From Anolis carolinensis (taxonomy: Eukaryota): DNA of 64,000 bases. The translations under genes and the position numbers were made by a program. The stretch is taken from assembly GCF_035594765.1 (NCBI RefSeq), contig NC_085844.1:39323923-39387922 (forward strand). Direction: 5' to 3'. Positions 19,034 through 58,481 of the stretch are shown piece by piece (positions within the stretch are counted from its first letter, which is position 1; each line of letters starts with the position of its first letter). Under the pieces are notes generated by a model. The model was given only the letters and a program-made list of their open reading frames with translations. It had not been told where the DNA came from and searched no databases.

Positions 19034-19482
19034 TTATTTGTCTTCAATTGAATTTTTTGCCTCTTCCAAGTCAAATGTGAAGGGTTTATCATAGCCCATA
19101 AGATGGCTATAATCTTGGGGATATTGAAAAAGCAACGGGTTAACAAGCATTGATTTTGTTTTAGCATAAAATGTTGTGAACATCTTGCTGATGTTTGGAA
19201 TCTTCACATCCTTTTGATGGAACACAGTTTTCTTTTCAGCCAGAATAGCATTATATGTAATGGCTGTGTAGGTGTCTGTTTCAGCCTTATGGTACAGTCG
19301 GATTACGTAGCCTTTGGTAATAAAATGCAGAGTAACAGGCGTTATGAACGTAAAGAATCCTACTACACTGTAAAAGGCAATTTGCAAAGGAAGGCTGTCA
19401 AGACCCACACCGGTTTTGAGGAGGAGGATGGGCATCATGCAGCCGCTAAACATGCTGGTTGAATAAGAGAAGAACTTCACCC
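19034..19482 (-). CDS. TMEM70: TMEM70 exon 3
   Basis: Acceptor TTTTCAG|; TAA at 19034; AATAAA (minus) at 18893-18898. Confidence 0.97.
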
Positions 19483-22185: not shown

Positions 22186-22424
22186 CTCCGGTTCACTCGC
22201 AGACTGAGCTCCGGCCAAGAAGCAGGAAGGACTCGCCGCCGCCTTCTCAAGCTCACTTCCCTTCCCTTCCACATCAGCAGGAGGAGCTTTCAAGCTCTGG
22301 CCCACCCAGCGCTTTGGACTTCATCTCCCAGAAGCCCTTGCTATTGTCCGAAACTGCTGAAGCTTCTGGGAGTCGAAGTCCAAAACTCCTGCAGGACTGG
22401 CGTTTAAGAATTAGTGCTACACTA

Positions 22425-22690
22425 CTAGCTTGGGGACCCGGCGTGCCCGGGTTATTTGAAAAGGGCATGGTTTGTTTTTGGATGTTAGGTAACATAATTT
22501 ATGTAATCTGCAATTACAGATATGTATTGTTCCAAAATGTGAAAAAAATAATAAACCCTGGGGAGAAAAACATTTATGGTAAGTGGGATAATCAACATGG
22601 ATTTTAATCTTGGATATGTTTAAAATATTATATAATGTGATTTTATTTTGTAATGGTATCTGCTTTTATATGAATTGTTTTGTACACAAA
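22425..22690 (-). mobile_element. Helitron 3' terminal remnant (second family) upstream of TMEM70
   Basis: Minus strand reads ACCCGGGCACGCCGGGT hairpin, then CCCCAAG-CTAG|T. Confidence 0.65.
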
Positions 22691-23216
22691 ACATGGCCAC
22701 ACAGCCCGAAAGACATACAACAACCCTGTTTTGTACACTGTTTGTTTGTTTGTTTATTTATTTACAGCATTTATATTCCGCCCTTCTCACCCCGAAGGGG
22801 ACTCAGGGCGGATCACATTGCACACATAAAGGCAAACATTCAATGCCATAACATAGAACAGAGACAAGACGCAGGCACGGGCTGGCCTCGAACTCATGAC
22901 CTCTTGGTCAGAGTGATTTGTTGCAGCTGGCTTACTATCCAGCTTGCGCCTATTTATTGTAAGCCGCCTTGAGTCCCCCCCATCCCCCCCGGGAGAAAGG
23001 CGGGGTAAAAATGATGTAAATAAATAAATAAATAAACATAGCATTCTGTCCAACTGTCTACAAACACCATACTTTTGATAACCACAAGGGTTGAATGAAA
23101 AGTAATGCCTCCACTTTCGATACTTGGGTTTGGATGGGAATATTTTAATAAATCAATCTCAGAAATAATCCTTAGAATGTGCTCTTTAACTACCACTGTT
23201 CGCTTTTCCACATAAT

Positions 23217-23479
23217 CAGGGCCGTAGCCAGGAAAAAAAATTCGGGAGGGGTTTTGAAAATTTTGGGGAGGGTTGAACCCCTACCACCCCCACCCACCCC
23301 CCGCTACAAACCTGTCAATATCTGCTTGAGATAGTGCCTGGAGGGACTCTTAATGTTTTACGTCTCATAGACTTAGCATGGGGATTTGGTGAACTAGTTA
23401 AAATTCATGAGTAAACCAGGGTTTTTTTATAACCTGAAAAAATTCAGGGAGGGGGGTTGAACCCCTTGCTACAGGCCTG
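23217..23479. mobile_element. hAT-type MITE nested in the mariner
   Basis: CAGG...CCTG ends with 8-bp TSD CACATAAT. Confidence 0.8.
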
Positions 23480-23800
23480 CACATAATCACCAGACAATTG
23501 GATGCATTTCTGCCAACAATGAAGAAGTTTTTTGAAGCTGTCACGGAAGAAGACGACACTGTTTCCGCAACCAGCGTCTCAGTTTTCTCAACGTCTTCAT
23601 CAGAAGCATAATGATGTCCCCGCAGATCTTTCATTATCGGGAACAGATGGATTGTCTGATTAATCTCTTTTGGGGTGACACCTTCTGCTGTCAAGAATTC
23701 AATGACTGCACGTTGCTTAAGTCGCATTGACCGACTGTCTGTGCAGGGTTCCATACTTCACACTTTAACAGCACAGCCGTTCAATGCTAAGGCTTCCTGC

Positions 23801-24082
23801 CAGGCCCGTGGCCAGGATTTTGATTCGGGGGGCTGAGATTTTGATTCGGGGGGGGGGGCTGAGTCTGGGTGAGGGGGGATACCCTAGCAAACCTTTCGTA
23901 TTGTTATCCCAATACCCCCATGCATATGGGATATATTGAGCATGGTGATCAGATCATGATATGAATAAAAATAACAGTTTAAATAATAAATATAAGGCCT
24001 TCTCGCGGACCATCCTGAGAATTTCGGGGGATGGGTGTGTGGATGAAGCCCCTCAAGCCCCTCCCCCCCGGCTAGATGCCTG
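23801..24082. mobile_element. Related MITE nested in the mariner
   Basis: CAGGCCCGTGGCC...GGCTAGATGCCTG imperfect TIRs; no TSD visible. Confidence 0.55.
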
Positions 24083-24811
24083 TGGAGTCTTCTGCACAAG
24101 CCAGTACCTACCGCATATCAGTAGTGCCATCTGTTGAGGAGTTACGAAGGTGGAGGCATTACTTTTCATTCAACCCTCGTAATTCCTTAAATCTAAAAAA
24201 AAAAGTTATAAAAAATGTCCTAGATTTTTCTCTAATGGATTCAGAATTTATTCACTTTAGCCAGTTCATTCAATTTTAACATAGGTGAGACTTGATTTTT
24301 TTCCAGATCAGAGCATGTAGCTGCCATGATTATATACTGAAATATTCTTCTATGACGTCTTTCCGGTTGTTCAGCCATATCTCTGAAAAGAAACGGTTCT
24401 GGTTTTAGGTGTATGCTAATCTCCAAAATCCTCTGAATCAGAAGTATTTAAACCCAGCACTTTTTTTGAGTTTTCATATGCCCACCATATATGATAAAAT
24501 GTCCCTTCTTGTTGGTCACATTTCCAACACGTATGTGAAACTCCCTTATACATTCTGGAGTTCAGCCTTAATGTCACTCACGATCTATTATATTGAAGAG
24601 AAAAGGCTGCAGTTCTTCATTGTACATAAGCACACTGCACTCTTATTATTTATTTATATAGCACAAATAATGTGCATGGCATGTTACTAGTAAAACAATT
24701 AAAAACAGCAGGTCCTGCCAAAGGTGGACAATGTAATATGTGTGCATATTATGAAGTATTAATTTAAAATTATACAATTGTAAAACTATTTCTCCAGATA
24801 AAACACACCAA

Positions 24812-27800
24812 AAGTCCAACAAATTCCTCACTTGCCTTGCAGACAATTTTATGGTCCAGAAGGTAGAAGAGGCAACAAGGGGATCAGCTACTCTTGATCT
24901 CATCTTAGCAAATGTGGAAGACCTGATCAATGCAGTTGAAGTGGTCGGATCCTTAGGGGCAAGCGACCATGTGCTCCTGCAGTTCGCCAAACAAAGTAAG
25001 GCTGAAACTAAGACAAGTCAAACAAACATTCTGGACTTTAAGAGAGTGGACTTCTAAAAAATGAAGGAAATACTGAGTGGTATTCCATGGACGCCAACAT
25101 TAAAAGACAAGGGAGTTAAGGATGAATGGGAGATTTTCAAAAGTTAAATACTCAAGGCGCAAATGCAAACAGTGCCAACAAAGAAAAAAAAATAAGACAA
25201 ATGCGAAGCCAGAATGGATGTCCAAAGAACTTCTAATCGGGCTAAGACTCAAAAGAGGCATGCACAAGAAGTGGAAATGGGGAGAAATCACCAAAGAATT
25301 CAACCAAATAGCCACCTGTGATGCCTCATAGGCCTTGTAGTCCTGTTCCTGGTACTATCGTGGCAGATGAAGATGAAAACATGGGGTTTTCGCCAGTTCA
25401 ACAAGAGCCGGAGTCCCTTCACCTGCCGGATGTTGATGTTTGCCCTCAAGAATTCATTAAACCAGGCCTTGGGCAGTACTCCCCTCCGTTTCCCAGGAAG
25501 GAATCTTATTCTAGAGACAGAGAAGTTAGAGAAGCTAATCGGAGAAGTCTAAGAATCGCTGCCAAACAACTGGCTGATTAGGTCTGCTTCCCTTGGGAAA
25601 TTCTAAGGAGTAATGCATCTGGACAGAGTGGGTTTCGCTTCTCGTTCTCTAGGGAAAGAGATTGTTGGCGGGAAAACGAGACCCAATATAGGGGTTTGGC
25701 GCGAGAGATTCTTTGCGGAGTCAATTGATCAGCTTCAGGAGAGAGATCATGTGTGGAGTTCGTAACCCCAGTTCCTTGCTTCCCGGATCAAGTTTTCGAG
25801 CCTTGCCTTGCCTTGCAGTTTAACCACGGACCCTGTTCCACGCTTCATGTTTTGCCTTGTTTCCAGTCACGGACCTAGTCAAGAATCAAGTTTATTTCCA
25901 GCCTTGCTGTCAAGCTTCATGGGACTTCTAAGACTCTGACATTTCCCCACACTATTGCTTGGCAAGAGTGTGTGTTTCGGTCAAGTGGATTAAAACTTTG
26001 AACTCTAATATCATTTATTGGACAATACATTTTTGGACTATATTTGACCTCTTTTGAAAGGTCTGTTTCTGAACTATATTCTTCACTTGTTTTTATTGCT
26101 TTTATACATTTCTTTAATAAAGATATTAGATAGAGACTGGCCTCCGTGTAAGGTTATTGGTGCCCAGCAGCCAGGGTTCTGACACCACCTTCTGTAGGAA
26201 AAACGTTCGCAAGGCTAAAGCGCAAAATGAGCTCAGGCTTGCCAGGGACATTAAAATCAACAAAAAAAGGCTATTTTGCTTATGTTGGTAGAAAAAGGAA
26301 GAACAAGGAGGCGATAGGGCCTCTGCGAGAAGATGGCGTGATGGTGACAGGGAACAGGGAAAAGGCAGAACTACTTAATGCCTTCTTTGCCTCGGTCTTC
26401 TCACAAAAAGCCGTCTTCAACCTCAGCTACATGGAATGGATGAAGGATTAGGGGAAATTCAACCCCAAATAGGGAAACAAGTTGTCCAGGAACACCTGGC
26501 CGCAATAAATGAATTCAAGTCCCCAGGGCCAGATCAACTACATCCAAGAGTATTGAAGGAACTAGCTGAAGTTATTTCGGAACCACTAGCAATCATCTTT
26601 GAGAGCTCTTGGAGAACGGGAGAAGTCCCAGCAAATTGGAGGAGGGTGAATGTGGTCCCTATCTTCAAGAAGGGAAAAAAGAACGACCCAAACAATTACC
26701 AGGCAAGATTCTGGAAAAGATCATTAAGGAAATGGTCTGCTAACACTTAGAAACAAATGTGGTCATCACTAATTGTCAACACAGATTTACCAAAAACAAG
26801 TCATGCCAGACTAATCTGATCTCTTTTTTCGGTAGTTACCAGCTGGGTCGATACAGGGAACGCCGTGGATGTAGCCTACCTGGATTTCAGTAAGGCCTTT
26901 GACAAAGTCCCCCACGACCTTCTGGCAAACAAACTAGTAAAATGTGGGCTAGGCAAAACTACGGTTAGGTGGATCTGTAATTGGCTAAGCGAACAAACCC
27001 AAAGGGTGCTCACCAATGCGTCGTCTTCATCTTGGAAAGAAGTCATGAGTGGAGTGCCGCAGGGTTCCATCCTGGGCCTGGTTCTGTTCAACATCTTTAT
27101 TAATGACTAAGGGTTAGAAGGCATGATCATCAAGTTTGCAGATGACATCGAACTGGGATGGATATTTAATACTCCAGAAGACAGGAGCAGAATTCAAAAC
27201 GATCTTAACAGACTAGAGAGATGGGCCGAAACTAACAAAATGAAGTTCAACAGGGACAAGTGCAAGATACTTCACTTTGGCAGAAAAAATTGAATGCAAA
27301 GATACAGAATGTGGGATTCGTGGCTCGACAGCAGTACATGTGAAAGAGACCTTGGAGTCCTCGTGGACAATAAGTTAAACATGAGCCAACAATGTGATGC
27401 GGCAGCTAAAAAAGCAAATGGGACTGCATCAATAAGAGTATAGTTTCTAGATCCAGGGAAGTCATGCTACCCCTCTATTCCGCCTTAGTCAGACCACACT
27501 TGGAATGCTGTGTCCAATTTTGGGCACCACAGTTGAAGGGAGATGTTGACAAGCTGGAATGTGTCCAGAGGAGGGCAACTAAAATGATCAAGGGTCTGGA
27601 GAACAAGCCTTATGAGGAGCGGCTTAAAGAGCTGGGCATGTTTAGCCTGTAGAAGAGAAGGCTGAGAGGAGACATCATAGCCATGTACAAATATGTGAGG
27701 GGATGTTATAGGGAGGAGGAGCAAGTTTGTTTTCTGCTGCCCTGCAGACTAGGACACGGAACAATGGCTTCAAACTACAGGAAAGGAGATTCCACCTGAA

Positions 27801-28013
27801 CACCAGGAAGAACTTCCTCACTGTGAGAGCTGTTCGACAGTGGAACTCTCTCCCCCAAACTGTGGCGAAGGCTCCTTTTTTGGAGGGTTTTAAGCAGAGG
27901 CTGGATGGCCATCTGTTGGGGGTGCCTTGAATGCAATTTCCTGCTTCTTGCAGGGGGTTGGACTGGATGGCCCATGAGGTCTCTTCCAAAACTCTATGAT
28001 TTTATGATTCTAT
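24812..28013 (+). mobile_element. 5'-truncated, decayed CR1 LINE (ORF2 EN end and RT), interrupted by a solo LTR
   Basis: Peptides [53 protein letters not shown]; stops and frameshifts; (TATGATTC)-type tail. Confidence 0.95.
25317..26184 (+). mobile_element. Solo LTR (Gypsy- or ERV-like), 868 bp
   Basis: TGT...ACA termini; perfect 5-bp TSD CCACC (25312-25316 and 26185-26189); AATAAA near 26115. Confidence 0.88.
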
Positions 28014-28195
28014 TAAATATATTCAACACAACATGCTGATCATCTCAATTATGTATATATAACAAACTGACAAGACAGATGTAAGAAATTGTGCAAGATT
28101 ATGAAATAATACTAAAATTCCAAAAATTCTGGAAAATACATTTTTACTTAAAGACTACACATGAGTATTAGAATCAAGTTGAATTCTTTAAGACT

Positions 28196-28420
28196 TATTT
28201 ATTTATTTATTTACAGCATTTATATTCCGCCCTTCTCACCCCGAAGGGGACTCAGGGCGGATCACATTACACATATAGGCAAACATTCAATGCCTTTTTA
28301 ACATAGAACAAAGACAAGACAAACATAGGCTCCTCGAACTCATGACCTCCTGGTCAGAGTGATTCATTGCAGCTGGTTGCAGCTGGCTTGCTCTCCAGCC
28401 TGTGCCACAGCCTGGGCCCT
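28196..28420 (-). mobile_element. tRNA-headed SINE with LINE-derived (TAAA)n tail (sister copies about 22755-22950 and 29691-29905)
   Basis: Three near-identical ~200-bp copies; minus strand has A-box TGTGGCGCAG-like and B-box AGTTCGAG-like motifs. Confidence 0.75.
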
Positions 28421-29085
28421 TATTAAATAAGGAAATACAGGATTTCTATATTTCTCTATCACACAGTCTGTGGAACAGCTTTTCCTAATCTATGCTCAAG
28501 TTGTGATGGGCATTTCAACACACCATAACAACACCGAGAGAGAAAGACTGTAAAAAAGCATAGCACTGTGTATCAGCAGAGTTAAATGCTAAGCAGATGA
28601 TGCTTGACTGAAATCTGGACCAGCATTAGACCCAAAAGCATACTGGAAATAATCCTGTGGTATATTTTATCATAACATAAAGCTGTAATGATGCAACTGT
28701 TAGTTCTCGGCTGGAGGGAAAGGGATGGCCAATGCAACAATTTTGAGTTGTTCTTTCAGTAAAGTGAACTGAAACCTGACAACATACGTTCTCTAAAACT
28801 GTACAATGAACACAGATAGCCATGTAGAAAGTCTGTGTATATCAGCTACAAAAATACTTTTCCTGTTTATTATATGATGACATTTCCCAAAGGTTATTCT
28901 GTCCCAAATAAACTTTGTGGGAACTTTTCAAATTAAGTGCTTAGCAGAATCCATGGTTCTTTGCTCGCCCTATGTGACTACCTGATGTTACAGAAGCAAT
29001 GCTTCCTGGTTATTTACTACATTTCAACGTTCAATACAAAAGTTTAATCATTTGTATAAAATCCTATCAGTTCAAAGTTTTTTCT

Positions 29086-29310
29086 TCAAGACACAGATGG
29101 TGGTGTAATTTGTTGTTTCAGTTTTTCAACAACATTCTTCAAATATGCTTCATCTTTGAAAAAGTACACATAGAGTTTTCTTTCCACCTGCTGTAGCTTA
29201 TTATTTTCCAAAAGCTTCTTCTTAACCTTTATGTCAGCAAGAAGATCCATAATAAGCTGATTTAATTTGTTTAGCTGGAATTCCAATCGCTGAAATTGTT
29301 CATTCAGTTC
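29086..29310 (-). CDS. HAUS3: HAUS3 last coding exon
   Basis: Acceptor TTTTAG|; TGA at 29086; candidate polyA signals (minus) ATTAAA 29043-29048 and AATAAA 28866-28871. Confidence 0.94.
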   Translation of the reverse strand, partial: ELNEQFQRLEFQLNKLNQLIMDLLADIKVKKKLLENNKLQQVERKLYVYFFKDEAYLKNVVEKLKQQITPPSVS

Positions 29311-32300
29311 CTAAAAGTGATGAAACACAATGAGCTTAACACATTTATATATTACATGATTCTAGCAAATCAACACCATATAAACTTGCATATTTGCAAT
29401 CTTCCTCACTTGCTGACCATTTTTAAAAATTTGCTTCTATATACATTTGATTTTAAATTGTCAGGAAGAGTACATTTATGCTCGATGGACAGAGTTTTGC
29501 TTGGCTGAGTAGCCAAGCTATTTTTTGTGGTTGCCATAAACCACTTTGGCTCTGCTGAGTTATCTAATAGTTAAGAACACTTCTGGTAGCAGATAATGCA
29601 TTATCTGCTGCTGCTTCTGTCTTCTACCAAGAACCTCACCAAAGGTTTTCCTCTGTTTCTACACATTTAACAGATGGAATTTCACAGATCCCATTTATTT
29701 ATTTATAGCATTTATATTCCGCCCTTCTCACCCCAAAGGTGACTCAGGGCGGATCACATTGCACACATAAAGGCAAACATTCAATACCATAACATAGAAC
29801 AGAGACAGAGACAAGACGCAGACACGGCTGGCCTCGAACTCATGACCTCTTGGTCAGAGTGATTTGTTGTAGCTGGCTTGCTTTCCAGCCTGCGCCACAA
29901 CCCGGCCATCAAACAACACATAACCTGTTCCGTGGGTTACCCAAGGGACTCCATCTCTACAGCATGTAGAAACAGGCGGATTTGAAAGACGGGCAGGAAT
30001 CAATTTCACTCGTCTTCCTGCTCATACATACTTAAAAATGGGTGTATTTGTTGTTTGCATTCTATTTTGTGATGTTTCAATATGTGTATTCATGTGGATG
30101 GTCTGCTAATGCCCCTCAATTCTTCAAATACATAAAAGATCCATAAATTATTATTTTATTTATTGCTGTAACTGCATAATGTCAAAGATCTCATTTTGAC
30201 TTATTGAAAGTTCCCTGTTTCTCACGCATGCTTCAGAGTTTACTGCTCAGAGAAGAAGGTGGTGTGGGTGGTTAGATGGAATATGTATTTTATTTTTGTT
30301 TCCTAAACATATGTACCTGCTATGAAACTGGCTACTTTTCCCACTAAGATCTGTGGTATTTTCTTTTTTGAACTTTAAATATTGTTGCTTTCATCACACA
30401 GGAGAAAAAAACTTCCACAATTGTGAATTTTTAAAAATTAAAACAAAAAAGAGAGAAAGTGGTGTAGAAGTACAGAGGAGGAAGAAATGGGAGGAGACAA
30501 ACCTGCCCATTTGATGGAAAATGAAGCAGATGGTTGAGTCTTGGGTTAAGACTCCTGGATGGAGGCCTGCTAGATTCTAGAGGGCATGCAGCTAATGCAG
30601 CATTCAAAGAAGGCATATGGGCAGAATAGCTTTCCTGTAGAACAATTAACTATATGGTAGTGTAATGGAGTTCAATGGGGCTTTTTGCGGGTGCACAGTT
30701 AGCATAAAAAAGACTGACATCTCATGTTCAAATGTCATTATTACAAAAACTTAAAAACATTGCCACAACTGATCCAAAGTTGCTCACCTGATTACTCAGA
30801 CAGATGCTTTCTCCACTGTGGTACAAAGAATCACGAAGGGCAATTACACCCTCATCCATCTTTGACAGAAGTAACATTTGATCTTCATTAGTTACTGTTA
30901 AACGATCAAGTAGTGACACTTTATCTAGATGTAGCTCTTCAGACATCTGCTCAAGACCTTCATGTGTTCTGAACAACTGTTTTGGATTCTTCCCTTCAAG
31001 AAGTTGATATAACCTTTAAAAACATGAGTGCATGGTAAAAATGAGATTGACTGAAATACAATTAATCTTCGAAAAGCAGCATGAAAATACAACACAAAAA
31101 TTACAATAAAACCTGCTTGCAGAAAAGTGGCATGACAGTAGCTGAATCCTGGCACCTTTTTAAAAAAAATCGTGTCAGAAGCGACTTGAGAACATACTGC
31201 ATATTGCTTCTGGTTGCTTCTGGTGTGAGAGAATTGGCTGTCTGCAGAGACATTGCCCAGGGGACACCAGGATGTGTTAGCTGGGGAGCTTCTCTCATGT
31301 TCCTGCATGCTAGACTTGACAGACAGAAGCTCACCCAGTCTTGTGGATTCGAAATGGCAACTTTCAGGTCAGCAACCCAACCTTTAGGTCAGCACAGTTC
31401 AGCCAGCACAAGGGTTTAACCCACTGCGTCACCTGGCAGCTAAAAGTGTACATGTATATTCGTATTATTTTCTATGTTTGACAGATCTTTTGCTAAAGAG
31501 TCACAGACTGATCTTTCCTAGTTAACTAAGGTCAGAGTAGAAACAATTTGTTGTTAACTGCCATCAAGTTGACTTTGACTTATGGCGACCCTGTGAATGA
31601 GAGACCTTCAAATCTCCCAGTTATCCACAGCCCTGCTCAGGTTTTGCAAACTCACACACAAGGAATCCTTGACGAAATGTTTCACTTGTAATGCAATCTT
31701 TTTCTTTTTCTACTGCCTTATACCTTGTCGAGTACCAGAATATTTTCCACAGAGGCATGTCTTCTCATGGTAAGTCCAACTGCCATCCTAATAATTCACA
31801 TTGGTGCTTCCACTTTTTCTGGTGTTTTTGACCCTCCTGCTTCAAAATTTGCTTTGTTTCAGAAAGAAAAGGGCAAGTGATAAAGACAGCTGACATAGTT
31901 CTCCATAGAAAAATTAGTCCTCAAATGCAACCTCTGGGGAAGGACCAATCAGAATCTGGCAGTTAACAACTAACAACACTTTCAATGGACGTTTCAGGCA
32001 GCATTTCTTAAATTGACCATCATCTTAAATTGAATCATTCTGGCTTGACATACTTATCAAGTTCTCAACTGCTTAGTGTGTGGAGATCACATTTAACTTT
32101 TATGCAATTCAAAATACCAGCTGAACAGAATTGCATAAGCCCATAATGCTTCCTTGTGTCAGAGCAATTATTTGGAAGGAAGTGCCATTAACTTGAATGG
32201 AATTTATGGATGCATTTAGATCTCATTTTTCTCCTAGTGAGAATAGATAGAAAAACAGTGGCAGCCTGAGCTTTCCTGTCACCTGAGGTGGAAGTAAAAA

Positions 32301-35300
32301 CAATTTGTTGTTGTTAACCGGTTAAGTTGACCGATTTAAGGTGACCCTATAAGATTGTATACAGTGCATTGATCGTTCATGTCTGGTAAATGGAATCACC
32401 AGGACTGAGGGGCATCACTTAACCTGCATAGCCACATTAGTGGCAGGAATGAACACAGAAACAAACAACGAAGATGAAGTTAGCACTGTAGGAAGACAGT
32501 GCTGATTATTTTTCTAATGTTGGCTTCCAGGGGTGGGGTGGAAATCTAAGTACTCTAATAGGAATGGTTTTGATGGCTGCCTGTTCTGTAGCACAAATGA
32601 TTCTCCATGTCACTCCTTCCTAAGTAGCTACACTCCAAGGTTACTTCCTCCTTTCTATGTGCTGAAAAATAGGATCCTTAGAGCCAGCAGTCTTCTCATT
32701 CTCCCTAAGATCCATGAACAGTGCAAATACTTGTGTGACAAGTCATTAGAGTTCACCAACTGACTTCTAGCCACAGTAAGATGCTTACCTTTGTGTCGCA
32801 TTATCCCTCAAATCAATAGTACTCCTTAGGATTTTATGATGGGATATAGATGGTTCAGACATTGTGTCTAGCGTCTGGGCCAAAGTATCACTGCTCCGTT
32901 TCAGATCATGAACCATATTTTCAAGCAGACGGCTATAATCCCTAAGTTTTCTCAATTCAATTTCATAAGCCAGTTGAAGAAATTCAAATGATGATTTCTG
33001 TTTCATCAGCTGGTGACATATTTGATCTTGTCTTGATATATAGTATTCCTGTCGAGCAATCTGTAGATCAAAATCACCTCTAACCACGGGCATATTCAAT
33101 AACTCTGCATCCTCCTTTATCAGCAAAGGCAACTTTTCACTGTTTATCTGAGACAAGTGTTTTTTAATTTTTGAAATTTCATTGTTCAGCCTAGAAATTC
33201 TAGGTTCAACTTTTTCTTTTCCAATAATCTGCAGAACAAATACAAAGATTCTTGTAAGCTATACAATCCAGGTCAGTTCATGCTCATTTCCCCTATATAT
33301 TGAAATACATATACTTATTAAAAATACTAGCTACCAAAATATTTTAGATTTCAGATTTGGGGAGGGGGGATTTGGAATGCATGTATTTGTATATACAACA
33401 TATACATAAAGAAATATCTTGGAGATGGCACTCAAGCCTAAATGTACAATATACTCATATACTCCTATACACATAGCCTAAAGGTCATTTTGTACACAAT
33501 ATTTTAAATATCATATTTACTCAAATCTAATGCTCACCTTTTTTGGCTAAATGATAATGTAAAAATTGGAGTGTGCACATGTGAGAAAGTGGAAAGTACG
33601 TGGGGTAGCAAGACAAAAACGAGGATTAGAAAGCAATGTACTAATCTTAAGATTTTCCGTATCACTCCAGTTCTCTCACATTGTACCAAATCCACTGTTT
33701 CTGTTTTAAGAAAGGGAGAACGTGCATAGAGTAGTGATGATCTCAAGAGAGAAAATTATGTGTAGGCAAAATGCATATCTGATCTGTTCTCAGCAGGTAC
33801 CAAAACAGCTCTAAGAAAATGTGATCCTTGATGTAAAAAAGGGTTTCCCAGTCCAGGTTACAGGGTCAGGGTTGATTGGCTTCTTTTTGTTTTTGGTTTT
33901 TCCCTGCCAGCTCATCACTTCTTATTATACTACTATAAAAATAATTTGTGCCAGATTTTTACATTCTTGATCCTCTCAGTTTCAGATGCCAATTGCAGAA
34001 TGACACCCATACATGTGGTATTTGTCCTCCATAGGCACTCCAAATGATTCTATTATATGAGTCTATTGGAAGCTATGACAAACATTACCCTGGAGGACTT
34101 TGAATATTCTTAGAGAAGACAACTCTCTAAAAATATTCAAAGTCCTCCAGGGAGACTCCATGGTAACTTTTAGCAGAAGCTATTCATTTCAATAGGGTTT
34201 GCTATTAGCTACTAAGCTCCACATTAAGTTCGGAAACATATCTCATGGATTCTACTGCTCTACATTTTTATAATCCCTCTCCACAGATGTCACCGAGGCA
34301 TTTTATAACAAATCAAAGTAAAAAGAACTAGTATCACAGACTTGTTTAAAAACTATACAGTATTAAAAGAGTTAAATCATTACATATGATACAATTATCT
34401 TGTAAAAAGATTGTGATAAAGTAAGAGAGGAAAAGAAAGAGGCCAAGAACACAAAATAGTATTAAGCTGAACTGGTATTTCTTTTGCCTGCAAGTAAATA
34501 GACTAGAGCTGAGAGGCAAAGAGCTTGTCTGGCAACATCACTGGGATGGTTAATAGACCTCCAAAGCAATATGAGGTCAAAAATAAGACAAGAATAGAAA
34601 CTACCAAACCTCTCTGACCTCTGGAAAAGATGAAACAGTTCTCAGATTAAGTTGCCTTTATCAGACTGAAGGGGATGTTAAATTCAGTAACAAACTGAAT
34701 AAAACAAAAGGTACCACCGGCAGTATTGACCTAACAACAAGCTCCTCGGGAGCCCAAGCAATAGCCCTTAGGTCAGTGGTTCCCAACCTGGGGTCCCCAG
34801 ATGTTTTTGGCCTACAACTCCCAGAAATCCCAGCCAGTTTACCAGCTGTTAGGATTTCTAGGAGTTTAAGGAAAAAAACATCTGGGAACCCAAGATTGAG
34901 AACCACTGCCTTAGGTGATCTGCTTGACCACGAGCTTACATTGCATTTCCAGAACCTGCTCTTTCCGTGTCCCAAATGTGCTTAAAGTCAAGCATGTCAG
35001 AGTGCAAGAGCATACAGAACGGTAGCTGGCTTTGGGATGAGTGTGTGGGAGGTAACAGAGAATTTTACCTAGTAAATCAACTGAATAAGGATACCAGAAA
35101 TAGTTTTAAGTTCAAATTTAACCATTATTTTCACCACGGCTTCATGTGGTGCAATAAATACAACAATAAAACTTACCCTCTTTAAAGAAGAAATATTTTC
35201 TTTTGCCCACTGAAGCCCTGCTTTCAAGCTTAGATTTTTAGCCTTCTGTTGAATCAGTTGATGCTCAGCACAAATATATGCCATCTGCAGCCTGGTCAGC

Positions 35301-36094
35301 TCTGTTCTTTCCTCCAATACATCACTACTCTCCTCACAAGTGGAGGAATTCCTTATGTCTAGAAGCTGGAAATGTTCTTCATTAGAACTTTCAACCAACT
35401 CAGCTATGCCATGGAAAAACTGCTTTTTTGTATAGAGAGTAAGAGATGTGGTGCTCTCTTCCTCCTGATGAAAGTATTTATCCAAATCATGTTGAGCTAG
35501 CAATACAGAATGAGCGACTAGTTCCTGTTGTCCGGGTGTAGCTGTAAGGAAAGAAGACAGTTTCGCCACTCCTTCAGAAACAGACTGCAATTTATTATTT
35601 ATCTTTGCATTTAGGGCAATGAAAGCCCCCTGGTCCTTTTTCATATTTTTAGGCATTTCTTCTTCTGTCCCTTTAAGTTTCAGAGACATCAGACTATTGC
35701 TTGAAGCCACTGTTTGAAGCTTGTTGCGACGGTTAATCTTTAGCTGTTTAATCTTTTGAAGACTCAGAAATTCATCCTCCAAGACTTTAAGGTTTGTTTC
35801 CTCGTCTTCCTCCTCACATTTATTGGTGTTTAATTCCACAGATTTGCACGTCTTGAGAGCTTCATCTAGAGCCTCTTCTTCTAATATTGGCTTTGATGAC
35901 TTGAGAATAGCAAAGGACTGCAGTTCTTCCTCCGATACCACATGATGCTCATTAACAGTTGTACAAAACCACTCCAGAAATGACTTATCTTCCAAAGTTT
36001 CAAATAACCAATCAAAGTCTTCACCATTAAGAGAATTCACTTTGGGATATCCTATCCTCTTTAGAGTTTCAACAAATTGATGTCCACAATCCAT
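29086..36094 (-). CDS. HAUS3: HAUS augmin-like complex subunit 3, complement(join(29086..29310,30788..31013,32789..33228,35177..36094)), 602 aa
   Basis: 918+440+226+225=1809 nt with no stops or frameshifts. Protein: MDCGHQFVETLKRIGYPKVNSLNGEDFDWLFE...LLNMPVVRGDFDLQIARQEYY...ERKLYVYFFKDE. All introns GT-AG. Confidence 0.96.
30788..31013 (-). CDS. HAUS3: HAUS3 coding exon 3
   Basis: Acceptor TTTAAAG|; donor CAG|GTGAGC; encodes RLYQLLEGKNPKQLFRTHEGLEQ. Confidence 0.92.
32789..33228 (-). CDS. HAUS3: HAUS3 coding exon 2
   Basis: Acceptor CTGCAG|; donor AG|GTAAGC; 440 nt. Confidence 0.95.
34774..34908. mobile_element. Palindromic hAT MITE in a HAUS3 intron
   Basis: CAGTGGTT...AACCACTG; 8-bp TSD CCTTAGGT. 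Confidence 0.88.
35177..36094 (-). CDS. HAUS3: HAUS3 first coding exon (exon begins at 36185 with 5'UTR)
   Basis: Acceptor after poly-T (TTTGCAG|) at 36186-36187; ATG at 36094; donor AGG|GTAAGT. Confidence 0.96.
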
Positions 36095-37074
36095 GACGTC
36101 AGATGTAAACTGACAGTCTGCTAGTAAGCTTCAAAAGTATCTGCCACAAACAAAAGTACTGTGACGTATGGTTTTGCGCATAGTTCTGCAAAAAAAAAAA
36201 AAACAAAAAAAAACAAAGAGAACACAAACCAATTAGATTACTAATTAGTGGGGTTGCATACTTAGAATTTTGCATAATGATAATAAGTACAGTGGGTCCT
36301 CTGCGTCCACAGGTTCAACCATCCATGGCTTGAAAATATTCAAAAACAGACTCCAAAAAGCATACACTGATCTCAGCCTTCAGGGAAAAAAAACTAAAAA
36401 CATGGCTTTGGGATCAGGATTTTGGTCAATAATGGGAGCAGTGCAATAATAGACTAAATTAATTTAATGACAACCCAGGCTGGCCCTGGAATATGACCTG
36501 GATTATGTGATTTTAATTTTTGTTTTAATGTTATGTTTTAATTGGTTGGTTTTAATGTTTTTGTTTATTCATTGATGTATGTATACATGTGGCATTGAAC
36601 TGTTGCCCTTTGTAAGGCTGCTTGGAGCCGAGAAAGGCGGGATACAAGTATGGCAAATAAATAAATGAAATAAATATATAGGAAATGCAGTTTTGTTACA
36701 TCATTGTATACAGCAGGACTTTAGGATCCACGGATTTTGTTATCCATGGAGAACCACTGTAGTACTGTACTTTAGCAATAACAATAACAACAATTACCAA
36801 TTGCTTAAGAAGAACAATCAACAATCTCCATGAACCAGGTTCATATACCAGACTAATAAAGTTTTTTTTAATGCTGAAGAAATTAGAATTAATTGCTTTC
36901 CCACTTTAAAGAATCATCAGCCATCCCAACTAGATTTAGGCTGCAATCCTAGGGTGCATCTATACCAAGCATGGGCAAACTTAGGCCTTCCAGATGTATT
37001 GGACTTCAACTTCCACCATTCCTAACAGCCTCAGCCTCAGGCCCTTTCCTTTCCCCCTCAGCTGCTTAAGGAAA

Positions 37075-37760
37075 TCCAAGGAAATTTGGATAAAATTATT
37101 GATAAAATAATAAAATGGAAAGTAGAGAAAGAGAAAGGAATCATGGGATACATTTACAAAATAATCACGGGAAAACTATACAATATATATAAAAAAATAC
37201 CTTGACAGAAATCTGGAAGGAGGAACTAAGTTGCAGTGAGAGAGAAATATAAAACTGGATAAATTCAATTAATAAAATAAAACATTTAAAGATAAAGGAA
37301 ATGCAATGCAAAATACAGACAAAATGGTATAGAATTCCTGTGTAATTAGCTCATATAACCAGAACCTCCCCAAAACAATGTTGGCACAACTGCGGGAAAA
37401 CCAGAACATACACCCACATGTGGTGGGATTGTGAAAAAAAAACATACAAAAGTTCCATAAAATAATAAAGAAGGAAATGGTGGAGTTATTAGGGATAAAA
37501 ATAGATTGGAACAGGAGAGAATTTTTCCTCCAGAAAATTGAAGGCGAAGGGGGAATCTAAAGAATGGGAGCGATTAATAAATTACATGTTAGGTGCAATT
37601 AAAGCCTCAGCCACTTTAGGCTGGAAGGACCAAAAGAAATGGGACATAAAAACATGGTATAAATATTTAGTGAACTACCTCCTCCAAGACTACATTAGTG
37701 AAAGGAAAAGTTACTACTGAATGGGCCAAATCAGAAATTCATGGGAGGCAAAATGGAAAT
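37075..37760 (+). mobile_element. Decayed L1-clade LINE ORF2 3' fragment in the HAUS3 5' intron
   Basis: A-rich strand encoding KWYRIP...CWHNCGK...YTHMWWDCEK cysteine-rich motif. Confidence 0.75.
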
Positions 37761-38476
37761 AAATAATAATAATAATAAACTTTATTTTTATATCCTGCCC
37801 CATCTCCCCGAAGGGACTCGGGGCGGCTCACAACGGGGACAAGCCCGAAACAATGACACAACATATTTGACAAAAAACATTTCAACGATACACAAAATAA
37901 AATAATGGACAATACATTAAAATCCAAGCAGATAAAATCAGAGTAATTAAAAGCAAACCAGTGGGGACAGGTTTCATAAAGTGCTGTATCATGAAAATGA
38001 GTAACAGTGATAAAGTGCCATAAGCTTTTAAAACATAAAGAAGTATTCTGATGACAGCTCTATGGGGAAAGGCTTAATTTACAGAATAACAAGGAAAGAT
38101 AAATATAAGAAATTAAGCAACATTATCCCCATGATTGAACAATCATAATAAATACAGCAAAATTTGTAAACTGTTCTCCAGGAGGGGAGGGAGAATGAGG
38201 GGGAACAATGTAAACATGTGTTACCAATGGAAAATGTTTTGAATGTTTGTATAATTTTGTGTAGCACTATTTACAATAATTTTGAAAATAATAATTTTAA
38301 AAAAACAGTCCAAAACACTTGGAGGGCCCAAGTTTGCCCGGGCCTGGTTTAGAGCTATAGCAGTGGTTCCAATCATACTCTTTTCCATCAATGTCTACTG
38401 AAGCACATTACACTCGGCTGGTGACTCGCCTCCTCTTTACTTGAGAGTAAGTCCTACCGAGTGTTGCTAGACTTAC

Positions 38477-38710
38477 TTCGGAGTTGAACGTGGATGGAAA
38501 CCCAATGCCTTGGGCTTCCTTTAGGCCACAAAGACAGCGCTTCGAAAAACCCCAAAAACAACGGACGCCGGGCAGGAAGGATTCAAACCTCCATCTTCTC
38601 GCGGCAGCCTGAGAGTTCTGAGAGTTTCGCGAGAGGAGGCTCTGTCCCTCCGAGTAACGAAGCCGAGTGAGTAACAAGGACTTTGGTTTTCTAGTTCCGG
38701 GGACGGTTTT
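38477..38710 (-). promoter_or_regulatory. Probable HAUS3 promoter and non-coding first exon
   Basis: Isolated CpG-rich patch; donor GAA|GTAAGT (GT at 38475-38476, minus); TTTGAAT CHR-like element (minus, 38581-38587); TTTCGCGAGA E2F/BANP-like motif at 38625-38634. Confidence 0.6.
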
Positions 38711-40389: not shown

Positions 40390-40830
40390 ATTGTTTTCAG
40401 AGTGTTGTTCTTTATTTACTGTCCCGATTTTAGAGTTTTTTAAAATGTTCGTAGCCAGATTTTGTTCATTTTCATGATTTTCTCCTTTCTGTTGAAATTA
40501 TCCACATGCTTGTTGATTTCAATGGCTTCTCTGTGTAGTCTCATGATAACTGTTAAGAGTGGTCCAGCATTTCTGTGTTCCCAAATAATATGCTGTGTCC
40601 AGGTTGGTTCATCAGGTGCTCTGCTATGGCTGACTTCTCTGGTTGAGTTAAATCTGCTGTGCCTTTCATGTTCCTTGATTCGTTTTTGGGCAATGCTGAG
40701 TTTGGTGGTGCTTATGTAGATTTGTCCACAGCTGCATGATATACGGTAGACTCCTGCTGAGGTGAGAGGATCCCTCCTGTCCTTTACTGAATGTAGTATT
40801 TGTAGTGTTTAGGATTAATGCTGTATCCCT
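40390..40830 (-). mobile_element. Older Penelope GIY-YIG endonuclease fragment
   Basis: Minus strand encodes ...RDPLTSAGVYRISCSCGQIY..., with decayed homology to 39490-39760. Confidence 0.8.
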
Positions 40831-40929
40831 TTAAGAAGATGCACTCTAGCCGAGCTACATGAAACTGGAGGTTGGGGAAGGAGGAGAGATATCGGCCAGT
40901 CTAGCCTTCTTTTACTCTGTCTGCGCTTG

Positions 40930-41160
40930 TGCTTCAGGAACCGGAAGTAGGTGTCTCTGACCCAGCGGAAGTGGCTTCGACGAGGGAAGGGGAGTATTTT
41001 TCCCGGTTGGGGAACCGCCAGGGGTTCCTGAGACGCGAGCGGGCGAGGAAGAGGTAAGTCCCGGCGAGTGAGGCGCCCTCCTAGGCCTTTCCCTTCTCTT
41101 CCCGTCCCGGGGGGCTTTATTGGAGCAAGAAGAGCCGTTCCTGCTGCCGGCAAGCGGAAG
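40930..41160 (+). promoter_or_regulatory. ELOC CpG promoter and non-coding exon 1 (ends 41053)
   Basis: Tandem ETS/GABP sites CCGGAAGT (40941-40948) and GCGGAAGT (40965-40972); donor GAG|GTAAGT at 41054. Confidence 0.75.
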
Positions 41161-41303
41161 CCCCATAACGTGGCCCAGTTCCCCCTTCAGAGCAGGAGTC
41201 AACATAAACTCCGCCCTTAAGAGAGCCCTTCGTTGGCCTGCCTTGGAATATATTTTCAGACTTCGGGAGGAACACAAAGAGCCTCAGCCCCACCTTCCTA
41301 CAC

Positions 41304-41421
41304 CAGGCATGGGGACACTTCGGCCTTCCCTCCAGGTGTTTTGGACTCCAACCGGCTGTTAGGAGTTGCGGGAGTTGGAGTCCAAAACACCTGGAGGGAA
41401 GACGAAGTTTGCCCATGCCTG
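41304..41421. mobile_element. Palindromic hAT MITE (CAGGCATGGG family; other copies near 6968, 36966, 52877, 57778, 59249)
   Basis: Fold-back TIRs CAGGCATGGG...CCCATGCCTG. Confidence 0.8.
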
Positions 41422-41597
41422 ACCAACACTAGAATGAATGCAGTTTGACGCCACTTCAAATGCCCTTGCTCAATGCTATGAAATGCTGGGAGTGGTAGTT
41501 TGGTAAGGCACCAGTCCTCATCGCCAGAGACTCCATAGCAGTTAAAGTGGTGTCAAACTGCGTTCGTTCTACAGTGTCTGTGCCCCTTTTCCCATTT

Positions 41598-41913
41598 AGT
41601 AAGGTAAAGGTTTCCCCTGACATTAAGTCTAGTCGTGTTAGACTCTGAAGGTTGGTGCTCATCTCCATTTCTAAGCTTTGTCCATAGACCTCACCTAGGT
41701 CCTATGGCCAGCATGACTGCATGGAGCACCGTTACCTTTCCCCAGAAGCGATACCTATTGATCTACTCACATTTGCATGTTTTCGAACTGCTAGGTTGGC
41801 AGAAGCTGGGGCTAATAGCGGGAGCTCACCCTGCTCCCTGGTCTTGAACCGCCAGCCTTTCAGTCAGCAAGTTCAGCAGCTCAGCAGTTTAACCCACTGC
41901 GCCACCGTGGGCT
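41598..41913 (-). mobile_element. Sauria SINE
   Basis: Reverse complement of the same family. Confidence 0.85.
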
Positions 41914-44900
41914 CCTCCCATTTAGTAGGTACTTTAAAATATGTAATCTGTGGGGTTAGATCGCCTCCCCCCCTCTCCTGGCATTCAGGAAACAGCTCAA
42001 AACTTGTCTGTGTAAGCAGGCATTGGACGAATGACACCAATACACAAACAGCCAAAGGAAACCATAGGATTGGTGCAATGTTTAAATGTCTTAATGTTTT
42101 ATGGTTATGCTGATGGTTTGTATAGTTTGTAATGATTTAATATATGGCTATATACAATTGCTTTTAGGCTTGTAATATTCTTTTATATGGATGTGAGGCA
42201 TTGAATCTTTGCCATTTACTATGTTGTGAACCGTTTTGAGTCCCCCCAGGGGTGAGAAAAGCAGTACTGTATATACATGAAATAAATAAATATCCATAGC
42301 ATGTGATGCAATGACTGCAGTGTCCTCTTATTGATCCTGCTTTCTGCCACAAACACACTTTGGCTGTGTTTGTGATAGGAAGCAACACCCATTTCTGGGA
42401 CAACTGCCCTTTTGTTATTTTTATGTGTTTTCAACTAGTTTCCAACTTATGGTGACACTCTCAAGGGGTTTTCTGGAGATGTATGTGACACACCCAAGGC
42501 CACTATCCAGAGCAGGCAGACTCCCAACGGCAGCCCTCCAGCTGTTTGGGCCTCCAACTCCCAGAAGCCTTAGCCAGCTTGTTCAGTGGTCAGGAATTCT
42601 GGGAGTTGGAGAACTGCATTTTGAGGAAGTCTCTCTCTCCCCCCCCCCCCCCCCCCCGGCAAATGAGGAATTGAATCCTGGTCTTCAGGGTTGTACAACC
42701 ACTACCCTAGCTAGCTTTGCCCTCCTTTTACTGGACAGCAGTGCCTGTTATGTCTTGCTTGTAACTGGCTTCTAATGCTTTCATTCAAATAGAATTCAAC
42801 ATTATTGGGAGAAGAAAAATGAGGTGATGGAGACCCCTTTCCAGGTATCTTGGAAAGCAAGCTTTCAGTGAATAGTCAAGATATAGGTCAAATCTTCTGC
42901 AAGAAGGGTTATAGTAATGTGTTAGAAACTCCTCAAGGCTTCCCTCTTTAGTTGTTCACAACTGTTTCTCAAATTTCTAAAATTCCTATTTTTGGTCAAT
43001 TCTGCTTCCATTTAAAATTGCAACTCAGCCATTTTTCTCAGTGTTTGAAGATAAATGGAGACAGTATGAACATTGCCCTGCTATAAAATAATTGTATTGT
43101 TAATTGTTAGTCAAAACAAATTTGCTTGGATTGCCATGCCTGAGGGGATATCACTTAAATTAATTTTGTACCAGATATTATATGGGAGCAGTGTGTTTAG
43201 GAGAACATGGACATTCAAGCTAAAGTGGTGCAAGAAACATTTTGAACTACAGATGTCAAATTAAAGCCCCTTATTTATCTTAACTGATCATTATTCTTGC
43301 ATAGAAATAGACTGATAATCAGTGTGCCTATTCATTGATCAATCAATATTAAAATGTATGCCTATGTTTGTGTAAGGAATTAATAACTTAGAATAGGGAA
43401 CTGGAACCAAGAATATTGTTCAACTTTGTACTCAGACAGCTACATTTCCCACACTGCTCCCAACTAATATAGTAACTTAGTCCAGATCCCCATATATAAG
43501 CTTTTAAAAAGCCTATATGCTGTCATGGTCCTAGATAATCTGCTGTGCTTCTGTTGCTGACTTTAGTAAATAGCTGTTGATCCAGCATTCTTCCAGCGAA
43601 TAGAAATAAAGCTGACATCCCAGTTTACTTGCAGTGAAGTCTTTTGATATTGATTTGCTAAGCTGAAGGTAAAAACGTGGCACTTGTTATATAGTGTGGG
43701 AAAAGAAAAGACAACGTTTATAGGTACATTTGGAAATGTCATAAAAATGGACAGTTTTGATGCAAACAGTATGCATTCAGGAAACAGCAACCCGCATCCC
43801 ATGGTATGTTAACAAAAGGAGCACTTGTCTCATATCTCAGAACTTTCTTGAAGAGATTGCAGAAGATAACAAGGTCCATTTGAAAGTTGTGGTGATAAAA
43901 GTTGAACTCAGTTAAGAGAAGTCAAGGTATACATCTAAGGCAAAACATTACCATCCCCTTATGCACACATGAAACAAAAAGTAAACATATTATGTTTTAG
44001 GGTCTCAGAAGAATTGCAACCATTTGTCACTACATAAATTAGTGTTCCTTTGTTATCAGTATCCTGTCCTGTCATAATAAGATTTTAAGTTGTATTGTAA
44101 TGCTTTTAATTGTGAGCCGGTTTAAGTCTCTATATGGAGAGAAAACGTGGGATATAAATAAACGTAATAAATAAATATTATTTTGAAATAATGGAGTCAG
44201 TGTATGCTTTAGAGACTAGATTGTGTGGCTGTTCATGATGCTGATGGTTTGACCTTTGGGGATGTTTCAAAACTTAAAACCGTTTAATGATTGCTTAAAG
44301 CCTTCTTATTAGCTAAGTACTTTGTTGAGATTGGGAAAAGACATAGGAATAGCATTTTGAAGAAAGAGGCCAAGGGAAGACCTGAAGGTCTGCAAGTGTA
44401 GGACTTATAAGTTGCTTAGCTTTGTTGAGGATTTTTAATGTGGATAATTTGTAGAAAGGGAAGCACAATCTTTGAAAATGTAACTATTAGGAAATTTCTT
44501 TTTATCTGTTCATCACATCAAAGATCCTTGTGGTATGAAACATCATAAATATTTTAATAAACAAATTACTTCAATACACTCCTCAAATTTCAGAGGGGAT
44601 TAACTGACTAGATCAAGAGGTAGAATGTATGCACTGCTTGTCATCCACCGACAAACTGATCAGTATTCATAACTGGCAAATGAATGTGTCTCGTGTCTCT
44701 TGTGCTAGCTCAAGTGGTGTTTAAGTTGCCTTTATCTCATGGTGACTTATTTAAGGTGTATAATGAATTCATATAGGTAATGCTTCTTTTGGCCTCTGGG
44801 ACATGGAAAACTGCTTTATGTTAGGCCAAGGCCTTGGTCCATTTAGGTCAGTGTTGTCTGTTCTGATTGTTAGGGGCCCTCTTAGATCGTAAGGCAGGAT

Positions 44901-46363
44901 TATATTCAGAAAGGCCTTCTCATAGTAGGAGTAGCTTTTGCCAGTGAAGCCATAACAACAGAAAAGGATCCTAGTAGATATGAACCAAAATCTTAGAATG
45001 TCTCTGAAAGAGGATATCCCCAGATAAGAGGTGTGTGGGAACACATGGAAGGCACCTGTAAATTATGTTAGCTTTCTTTCTTGTTGTTTGCAGCAGTTCA
45101 CATCTGGCTCTTATGCTGCTAATTGGAATCAGAGCACCTATGTATTAGTATTTACTAAATAGAAGTAAGTATCTCCAGGTGGTTTTTGTCAAAGTTAGGC
45201 ATGCCAAATGCAAAAAAGAAAAAAAGAGGATCTTTGCCCTGTGGTTGATTGGCTATCATGGATAAAAGATTTAAAATCTGAGACACACTCTGAATCTCAT
45301 AGCTTCACAGGGCCTTGAACTGCTACTCTTGTATGAGATTCATTGGTATAAATTGCTAGGTTGGTGTAGCTTTCTTGTGTACATCTTCCCTCTTTTACTC
45401 TTTGTATGTTGTATTAATTTTCCAAAACCTAGTTTATTTTAAGTTGATGTATTCTTATTTCAACTAGTGCTTTTTAAAGTACTTCAAAATAGTTCATCCT
45501 ACTTATTTTTGTGCTTTTATGGTAAAGACTAGTCCCCTTTTTGAGCCTGGAGAAAAACTGTGAGTTAGTCAAGAATCATGTATATTATACATGACTGACC
45601 CAAGCCAATAGCTGAGTAATTTAATTCAGTACCATCTAAATATTCTCAGATAGTTTAAGTGCAGCGCTCCTTTCTCCTGTAAAGTGCAGTGTATTACAGT
45701 AATCTCAATGTGATATTAATAGAAGATGTATGACAGTAAAGATCCAAATGGTGTAGTGCAAGTCGCAGTCTTTTAAAGGAAAGCAATGGCAAATATCTGA
45801 TCCCATGATAGGGTTGTCACAAGTTAGAGTTAACTTGTAGTCACATAGCAAGAACAATTTATGATCATAGTCAGGTCTGGAAACCAAAGCTTAGAAAATA
45901 TACTTAGACTATCACTCCCATAATTCTCCAATCATTGTGATCGATGACCTACTGAACTTAGATTTATGTAATGAGATGTAGGATTTAAATTGAGTTGTTG
46001 CTGGATTCATTGGTACAAACTGTCCAGATGACGTTATGTCCAGAAGTGGCCTTGTTCTTGGTCATTTGACTTCTAATTGCACAGCAAGGGCTTGTGTATA
46101 ACCTTGGTCTTGAGCTAGTAGTGACTCGTCAAAGCATTGTTCGCCCTTGACTTGGAAGGGTGGTACAGTAAACACAGCTAAGTTATGTTTCTAATTAACA
46201 TCAAAGCCAACTCTAGAAAGGACTGCAGTTAGTGACCTTATATCTCTTACATTCTTTGATTGCTTTCAACAATGAACTTGAATGTGAATGTACTTTTCCA
46301 TTTGTTTTCAGATCCTGTTTGTAAATCGGTAAAAGCTAAGAGCCAAGCATTTGATAAGGAGAG

Positions 46364-49313
<2,950 letters not shown>

Positions 49314-58480: not shown

Positions 58481-58481
58481 C

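Follow-up and report, generated by a model that had tools for sequence, protein, structure and literature searches.

An intact HAUS3 gene lies between ELOC and TMEM70 in squamates, apart from POLN

The analysed window, a 64-kb stretch of the Anolis carolinensis genome without N runs, contains a HAUS3 gene on the minus strand that encodes 602 amino acids in four coding exons, separated by three coding-region introns that are all of the GT-AG type in the gene model. HAUS3 is subunit 3 of the augmin-like complex, an essential protein acting in microtubule branching in the spindle. The end of the 5´UTR and the first coding exon occupy 35177..36186 (minus strand), with the ATG at 36094, 306 codons (36094-35177), a GTAAGT donor after 35177 and candidate acceptors near 36186 and 36141. 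They are followed on the same strand by coding exon 2 (32789..33228, 440 nt), which ends two bases into a codon, in the same phase as in the outgroups, and by coding exon 3 (30788..31013, 226 nt). The last exon, including the 3´UTR (28446..29310, minus strand), provides 74 codons plus the TGA at 29088-29086 (CDS 29310-29086); poly(A) signals are found at 29048 and 28871, and similarity to Sceloporus across this end extends as far as 28446.

Homology searches were carried out exon by exon rather than with the joined 602-aa model. Exon 1 matches the whole Pfam profile PF14932 (HAUS-augmin3; E 4.3e-83, profile positions 1-260 of 260), and no Pfam match was obtained for exons 2-4, which are short and were searched singly against a local Pfam library. 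The HAUS3 protein of Anolis sagrei, carrying PF14932, PF27044 and PF27045, covers residues 1-602 with 91-92% identity over the four exons. The gene model and this alignment agree on a complete 602-aa HAUS3 with three coding introns between TMEM70 and ELOC, as the earlier note on this DNA had described. Judged from its place in the gene tree, the window gene is the HAUS3 orthologue. Its domain set, its length of about 600 aa, its four coding exons, the sites of its introns and the purifying selection on it are all shared with other vertebrate orthologues. It departs from them in location alone, occupying the ELOC-TMEM70 interval instead of a site upstream of the POLN coding exons.

TMEM70 (19034..22350, minus strand) lies downstream of HAUS3 as an intact gene of three exons (coding 22185-19034), with a CpG island at 21901-22350, the ATG at 22185, exon 2 at about 20333-20187 and exon 3 at 19483-19034. 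On the other side, ELOC (40801..49313, plus strand) is head to head with HAUS3; its first exon lies with a CpG island at 40801-41250, and further along come a conserved exon block (46160-46429) and the coding exons (about 47733-47878 and 49124-49313). A further CpG island with a first coding exon (58051..58650, plus strand, start at 58482) presumably belongs to UBE2W, a name assumed from a short N-terminal peptide and the expected gene order, and on the basis of this exon the window is read as the UBE2W-ELOC-TMEM70 block. The spacer between HAUS3 and TMEM70 (22186..28445, no strand assigned) consists mostly of repeats and contains no POLN exon. Within it, at about 26.2-28.0 kb on the plus strand, lies a fragment of a CR1-type LINE that includes a reverse-transcriptase domain.

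The search for POLN was performed with six proteins from tuatara, turtles, crocodile and rhea as queries. No POLN-like coding sequence was detected in the whole 64-kb window (best E 1.3); in the POLN gene of rhea, which served as positive control, this search gave 13-27 exon matches. The lack of POLN that the earlier note had reported between HAUS3 and TMEM70 thus extends to the full window.

Upstream of the coding exons, a CpG scan together with squamate conservation delimits a candidate HAUS3 promoter with a putative non-coding first exon (38401..38710, minus strand). The CpG-island-like block itself (38401-38700) has a GC content of 0.52 and an observed/expected ratio of 0.89, and its conserved core spans 38563-38701. 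The block of promoter-type motifs is kept in Sceloporus and Podarcis, and its motifs recur in snake and gecko. The CpG promoter claimed for HAUS3 is therefore confirmed as a conserved block; the promoter function of the 38.4-38.7 kb region and the limits of the first exon are predictions made from these features. A short promoter motif may be common to this gene and the turtle HAUS3/POLN unit: a 17-mer of the block matches the HAUS3/POLN locus of the turtle once, on the right strand and within the CpG island located upstream, against 0.02 matches expected, this being a single, post hoc match at 14 of 17 positions of a quality reached in about 2 in 100 shuffles. The 17-mer was not found in rhea, nor in the turtle TMEM70 locus or the frog ELOC-TMEM70 locus. 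Comparison of the window with the outgroup loci revealed no non-coding similarity past the exon edges, so that no limits of a moved segment emerge from it.

The position between ELOC and TMEM70 is common to all sampled squamates, including geckos and snakes. The order ELOC<-HAUS3->TMEM70 is found in Podarcis raffonei, Eublepharis macularius and Pituophis catenifer, in all three with ELOC (Skp1_POZ, 112 aa) on the opposite strand and TMEM70 (PF06979) on the strand of HAUS3, and the Sceloporus locus is collinear with the window by blastn. In the snake Pituophis, TMEM70 begins only 1.2 kb past the HAUS3 stop codon. A protein search found no POLN at four squamate HAUS3 loci. Since four independent squamate assemblies agree, the order seen in the window is not a mis-join; this artefact, for which nothing was found apart from the repeats that flank HAUS3, can be dismissed in view of the identical order and orientation in four independently assembled genomes and a window without N runs.

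A different arrangement is observed outside squamates. POLN (PF18049 plus PF00476) begins 2-3 kb downstream of HAUS3 in the turtles Malaclemys and Trachemys and in Rhea, and the gene models of alligator and chicken fuse HAUS3 with POLN. The turtle POLN gene spans 213 kb, and in rhea no gene was called within 10 kb past the 3´ end of POLN. HAUS3 and TMEM70 are on separate chromosomes in Malaclemys and Rhea, and in neither of them do the 10 kb upstream of TMEM70 contain HAUS3 or coding exons of ELOC. In Xenopus tropicalis, ELOC and TMEM70 stand head to head, 5.6 kb apart, with neither HAUS3 nor POLN at the locus, and in human they form a head-to-head pair at 8q21. From the frog locus and the human map, ELOC and TMEM70 would also have been adjacent in the sauropsid outgroups.

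The first exon is common to HAUS3 and POLN in zebrafish, mouse and human, and this arrangement "appears to be conserved in vertebrates" according to Takata et al. 2015 (PMC4591814). Squamates are an exception to it. The squamate gene keeps the coding-exon layout of the HAUS3/POLN unit (PMC4591814) and probably its non-coding first exon, but HAUS3 is followed by TMEM70 and not by POLN exons. It is highly improbable that reptiles or tetrapods ancestrally had the order ELOC-HAUS3-TMEM70 and that linkage to POLN is the derived state, given HAUS3->POLN in turtles and a bird, the joined models of alligator and chicken, the first exon shared in fish and mammals (PMC4591814) and a frog ELOC-TMEM70 locus that lacks HAUS3.

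The positions of the HAUS3 coding introns are identical at all seven loci compared, including those of turtles and rhea, and dN/dS amounts to 0.19-0.24, showing purifying selection. From orthology and this ratio, the window HAUS3 would be expected to serve in the augmin complex. A quick ML tree was built with exon 1 standing for the window in place of the joined model. It groups the squamates in a single clade (support 100) whose branching follows the species tree, and it joins the window sequence to Anolis sagrei (support 99). More than 20 squamate species are present among the HAUS3 relatives listed, and likewise among the TMEM70 relatives listed; the HAUS3 relatives comprise one lineage per squamate species.

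It is therefore proposed, with a probability of roughly 0.85, that the window gene is the single functional HAUS3, relocated as DNA between ELOC and TMEM70 before crown squamates and away from POLN. Introns at the outgroup positions, a dN/dS of about 0.2 and a species-like gene tree point to one DNA-level relocation on the squamate stem. Since the gecko also has it, the relocation is older than crown Squamata, and it would probably have followed the divergence from turtles and archosaurs. As to the mechanism, the gap of the head-to-head ELOC-TMEM70 pair would have received, by copying or transfer at the DNA level, a segment of roughly 6-10 kb. On this segment, all four coding exons of HAUS3 would have travelled together with the introns between them, and the promoter and first exon of the ancestral HAUS3/POLN unit probably came too. 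The POLN exons would have been left behind, so that HAUS3 came to lie outside the first intron of POLN. HAUS3 would then point away from ELOC and be transcribed from a small CpG promoter of its own, at a distance of 1-2 kb from the ELOC promoter, with TMEM70 now downstream on the same strand, and POLN itself would apparently have been lost from squamates.

Several proposals of the earlier note can be placed against this history. The splitting of the divergent ELOC/TMEM70 pair by HAUS3 agrees with the head-to-head Xenopus pair, and the uncoupling of HAUS3 from POLN with the HAUS3->POLN order kept in turtles and rhea, as well as in zebrafish, mouse and human (PMC4591814). HAUS3 does not stand between ELOC and TMEM70 in turtles, rhea or frog, the mis-join raised as a caution is contradicted by the four assemblies, and the gene tree and dN/dS suggested in the note gave the order of the species tree and purifying selection. 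The event was rightly placed as derived with respect to the outgroups but is not specific to anoles. The argument that retained introns exclude retroposition stands for a processed retrocopy, with all three introns at ancestral positions, and is too strict for an unspliced transcript.

The suggested loss of POLN gains indirect support. With tuatara POLN as query, not one of the best 120 of 453 relatives is from a squamate; turtles, crocodilians, birds and mammals (marsupials and a primate) are among them, and a squamate POLN that has diverged strongly could lie beyond these 120. No squamate protein with PF18049 or PF00476 occurs among the POLN relatives listed. As a calibration, squamates score similarly to marsupials and birds against tuatara HAUS3. 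Judging by the best 120 of 453 relatives, POLN seems to have been lost from squamates. A bolder version, tentative and rather to be doubted, is that lizards and snakes as a whole are natural POLN nulls: a single event would have cut the promoter, the shared first exon and the HAUS3 exons out of POLN and inserted them between ELOC and TMEM70, and the promoterless POLN would have decayed. The escape of an essential gene would then have killed its dispensable host.

The squamate gene could instead be an extra paralogue, with the original HAUS3-POLN unit persisting elsewhere and nothing lost. The POLN evidence comes from the best 120 of 453 relatives, which leaves some room for such a copy; it is nevertheless improbable, because each squamate species has one HAUS3 lineage that tracks the species tree, and because no squamate PF18049 or PF00476 appears among the POLN relatives listed, where squamates that evolve more slowly should reach scores similar to those of birds and marsupials.

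About as improbable is the retroposition of an unspliced HAUS3/POLN transcript beside the ELOC/TMEM70 CpG promoter, the intron-retaining copy using resident promoter activity. A single transcription unit has indeed moved, directly adjoining a pre-existing bidirectional promoter region, and the motif shared with turtle could sit within exon 1 and hence travel in RNA. However, retrocopies with every intron kept are very rare, the block conserved in squamates has several promoter-type motifs, and neither the ELOC-TMEM70 locus of the frog nor the 10 kb upstream of TMEM70 in turtle contains anything corresponding to this block. Poly(A) or target-site traces would not be expected to survive about 200 million years.

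The preferred relocation as DNA resembles other DNA-mediated transpositions or duplications of single genes, in which the introns and probably the gene's own promoter are kept and one gene appears between otherwise ordered neighbours. It differs from them in that the donor was nested in the first intron of POLN and shared its promoter, so that the move could have decapitated POLN. The neighbourhood is otherwise the one expected from the Xenopus pair and human 8q21, in its flanking genes, in their orientations and in UBE2W as the next gene; the exception is HAUS3 itself, inserted so that it faces ELOC head to head and is followed in tandem by TMEM70. A housekeeping bidirectional pair would thus have been rewired from ELOC-TMEM70 to ELOC-HAUS3.

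No report of the HAUS3-POLN separation or of POLN loss in squamates was found in the literature library searched. The biological role of DNA polymerase nu (POLN) is still unclear. POLN knockout mice are viable and fertile (PMC5472330). More than ten thousand squamate species in which POLN is seemingly gone would be a natural experiment on its dispensability, and squamate HAUS3 would be a clear example of a nested essential gene freed through a small DNA-level transposition. The gene order can be read in public annotations, and the value of the observation lies in its comparative reading rather than in a new gene.

HAUS3, which encodes augmin subunit 3, occupies the interval between ELOC and TMEM70 in all sampled squamates, not just in the genome of the window. 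The earlier note had described a complete HAUS3 at this place without POLN, the DNA polymerase nu gene that overlaps it in other vertebrates, and had deduced a DNA-level move or duplication. The observation is correct, and the deduction withstands its own refutation tests (HAUS3 at the same place in outgroups, or a mis-join around 24-39 kb). The literature searched yielded no account of HAUS3 between ELOC and TMEM70, or away from POLN, in squamates.

The gene comprises four open segments between 29086 and 36094 on the minus strand. With splice sites read from the sequence, these are coding exons 1 (36094-35177), 2 (33228-32789), 3 (31013-30788) and 4 (29310-29086), totalling 602 codons with GT-AG at all exon borders. 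Exon 1 matches the Pfam HAUS-augmin3 family end to end (E 4e-83), and residues 1-602 of the Anolis sagrei HAUS3 protein align at 91-92% identity on exactly these four exons. A dN/dS of 0.19-0.24 between the window HAUS3 and other lineages indicates purifying selection. A polypyrimidine-AG acceptor ~90 nt 5' of the ATG predicts a non-coding first exon still farther upstream. The order in the window, which contains no N runs, is UBE2W, ELOC, HAUS3 and TMEM70; ELOC and HAUS3 are arranged head to head, HAUS3 and TMEM70 in tandem. By its sequence the window comes from an anole near A. sagrei yet separate from it.

HAUS3 searches were run with single exons of the window gene, and genomic context was compared within 10 kb flanks. 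The word search with exon 1 reached more than 20 squamates, as well as turtles, tuatara, crocodilians, birds and mammals. In the lacertid Podarcis raffonei, HAUS3 is preceded by ELOC (a 112-aa Skp1_POZ gene) on the opposite strand and followed by TMEM70 on its own strand. The same arrangement is found in the gecko Eublepharis macularius and the snake Pituophis catenifer, and the iguanian Sceloporus is collinear with the window by blastn. Outside squamates, a gene with POLN pseudo-exo and family-A polymerase domains begins 2-3 kb downstream of HAUS3 in the turtles Malaclemys and Trachemys and likewise in the bird Rhea pennata. HAUS3 and TMEM70 are on different chromosomes in Malaclemys and Rhea, with no HAUS3 in the 10 kb upstream of TMEM70. 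In the frog Xenopus tropicalis, ELOC and TMEM70 are head to head at a distance of 5.6 kb, with ELOC upstream, and the locus has no HAUS3 or POLN match. Takata et al. reported that HAUS3 and POLN have a common first exon in zebrafish, mouse and human, a relationship that "appears to be conserved in vertebrates" (PMC4591814). Together with the turtle, rhea and frog loci, this makes the squamate ELOC-HAUS3-TMEM70 order derived; the position arose before crown Squamata, since it is common to a gecko.

In the source annotation of alligator and chicken, POLN products are called HAUS3 isoforms (P0146, P0147, P0200, P0206, P0239 and P0241 among the listed relatives of tuatara POLN), a naming trap for cross-species counts of either gene; a 1111-aa alligator model fuses HAUS3 C-terminal domains to the polymerase. 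At the Pituophis locus (L007, 16718-17960), just 1.24 kb separates the HAUS3 stop from the TMEM70 start on the same strand, so there must be near-overlap between the HAUS3 3'UTR and the TMEM70 promoter, which leaves room for read-through or co-regulation.

A processed retrogene is ruled out, because the rhea, two turtles and four squamates including the anole have the three coding introns at identical protein positions. All squamates fall into a single clade of the HAUS3 tree (support 100), within which the order is the usual one, and rooting on mammals places tuatara beside it. The presence of one lineage per species indicates one event and probably no surviving second copy.

The promoter region may preserve a trace of this event. 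Upstream of HAUS3, a CpG block (38563-38701) conserved in Sceloporus and Podarcis contains CCGGAA, which we take to be ETS-like, a near-palindrome like TCTCGCGAGA, and a presumably YY1-like element followed by GGTTTGAATCC. The near-palindrome and the YY1-like element also occur in the snake and, wider apart, in the gecko, always within the CpG island upstream of HAUS3. The last element, in a 17-mer form, is found once in 30.5 kb of the turtle HAUS3/POLN locus (0.02 expected), on the sense strand within a CpG island 2.65 kb upstream of the HAUS3 ATG; it was found neither in the turtle TMEM70 locus nor in the frog ELOC-TMEM70 locus. This post hoc and modest signal favours the view that the ancestral promoter or first exon moved together with the coding sequence.

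A block at the ELOC promoter (~40917-40977) shows conservation of its own across squamates. In Podarcis just ~1 kb separates it from the HAUS3 block, as against 2.2 kb in the anole, where inverted and direct repeat elements occupying 38.8-40.65 kb account for the gap. Within this spacer (38795-40650), inverted arms of 171 nt (39174-39344 and 39761-39931, 93% complementary) enclose part of a 186-aa ORF on the minus strand (39394-39954) with no Pfam match. Sequence like these repeats is also present at 18.1-18.5 kb.

The absence of POLN exons between HAUS3 and TMEM70 was likewise borne out. The POLN first coding exon, recognised in the turtle and rhea loci through their mutual similarity, has no counterpart in the window or the squamate loci. 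Against the window and four squamate loci, six full-length POLN proteins (from tuatara, two turtles, crocodile and rhea) gave chance-level matches only (best E 0.049); applied to the rhea POLN gene as a positive control, this search gave 13-27 exon matches. Repeats make up most of the 6.9 kb from the HAUS3 stop to the TMEM70 start; among them is a CR1-type LINE fragment (26227-27989, plus strand) that carries a reverse-transcriptase domain. Relatives of this LINE are found upstream of Sceloporus HAUS3 and within POLN introns of turtle and rhea.

A representative search that started from the first POLN exon of the turtle reached tuatara POLN. The best 120 of 453 matches in its word search comprised tuatara, ~17 turtle entries, crocodilians, ~85 bird entries, six marsupials and one primate, with no squamate among them. 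With a tuatara HAUS3 query, squamates score in one band with marsupials and birds, so a squamate POLN, if annotated, would be expected among those listed matches. For HAUS3 and for TMEM70, the database searched covers more than 20 squamate genomes. This evidence, indirect but good, makes it probable, at roughly four chances in five, that squamates lack an intact POLN. Mice lacking Poln are viable and fertile, and HAUS3 has been called essential (PMC5472330), which makes it plausible that POLN was lost once HAUS3 had become independent.

Regarding the neighbouring genes, the minus strand carries an intact TMEM70 (ATG at 22185, last exon 19483-19034; Pfam TMEM70, E 2e-42), ELOC coding exons lie near 47.73-47.88 and 49.12-49.31 kb on the plus strand, and a UBE2W-like first exon is found at 58482. 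CpG-island-like blocks occur only at 21.9-22.35, 38.4-38.7, 40.8-41.25 and 58.05-58.65 kb. A block at 46160-46429 is conserved in Podarcis, gecko and snake and falls where their annotations begin the ELOC coding range; an upstream exon seems to close with the ELOC start codon and would thus hold only some four coding bases. Copies of a SINE-like element with a common long pseudo-ORF (3008-3232, 21441-21749, 41635-42113 and 57699-58013) directly adjoin the TMEM70, ELOC and UBE2W CpG islands. Finally, two copies of a dispersed repeat on the same strand, 54 kb from one another (1944-2600 and 55792-56333), are near-identical; both contain an 81-aa ORF, with few residue differences between the two.
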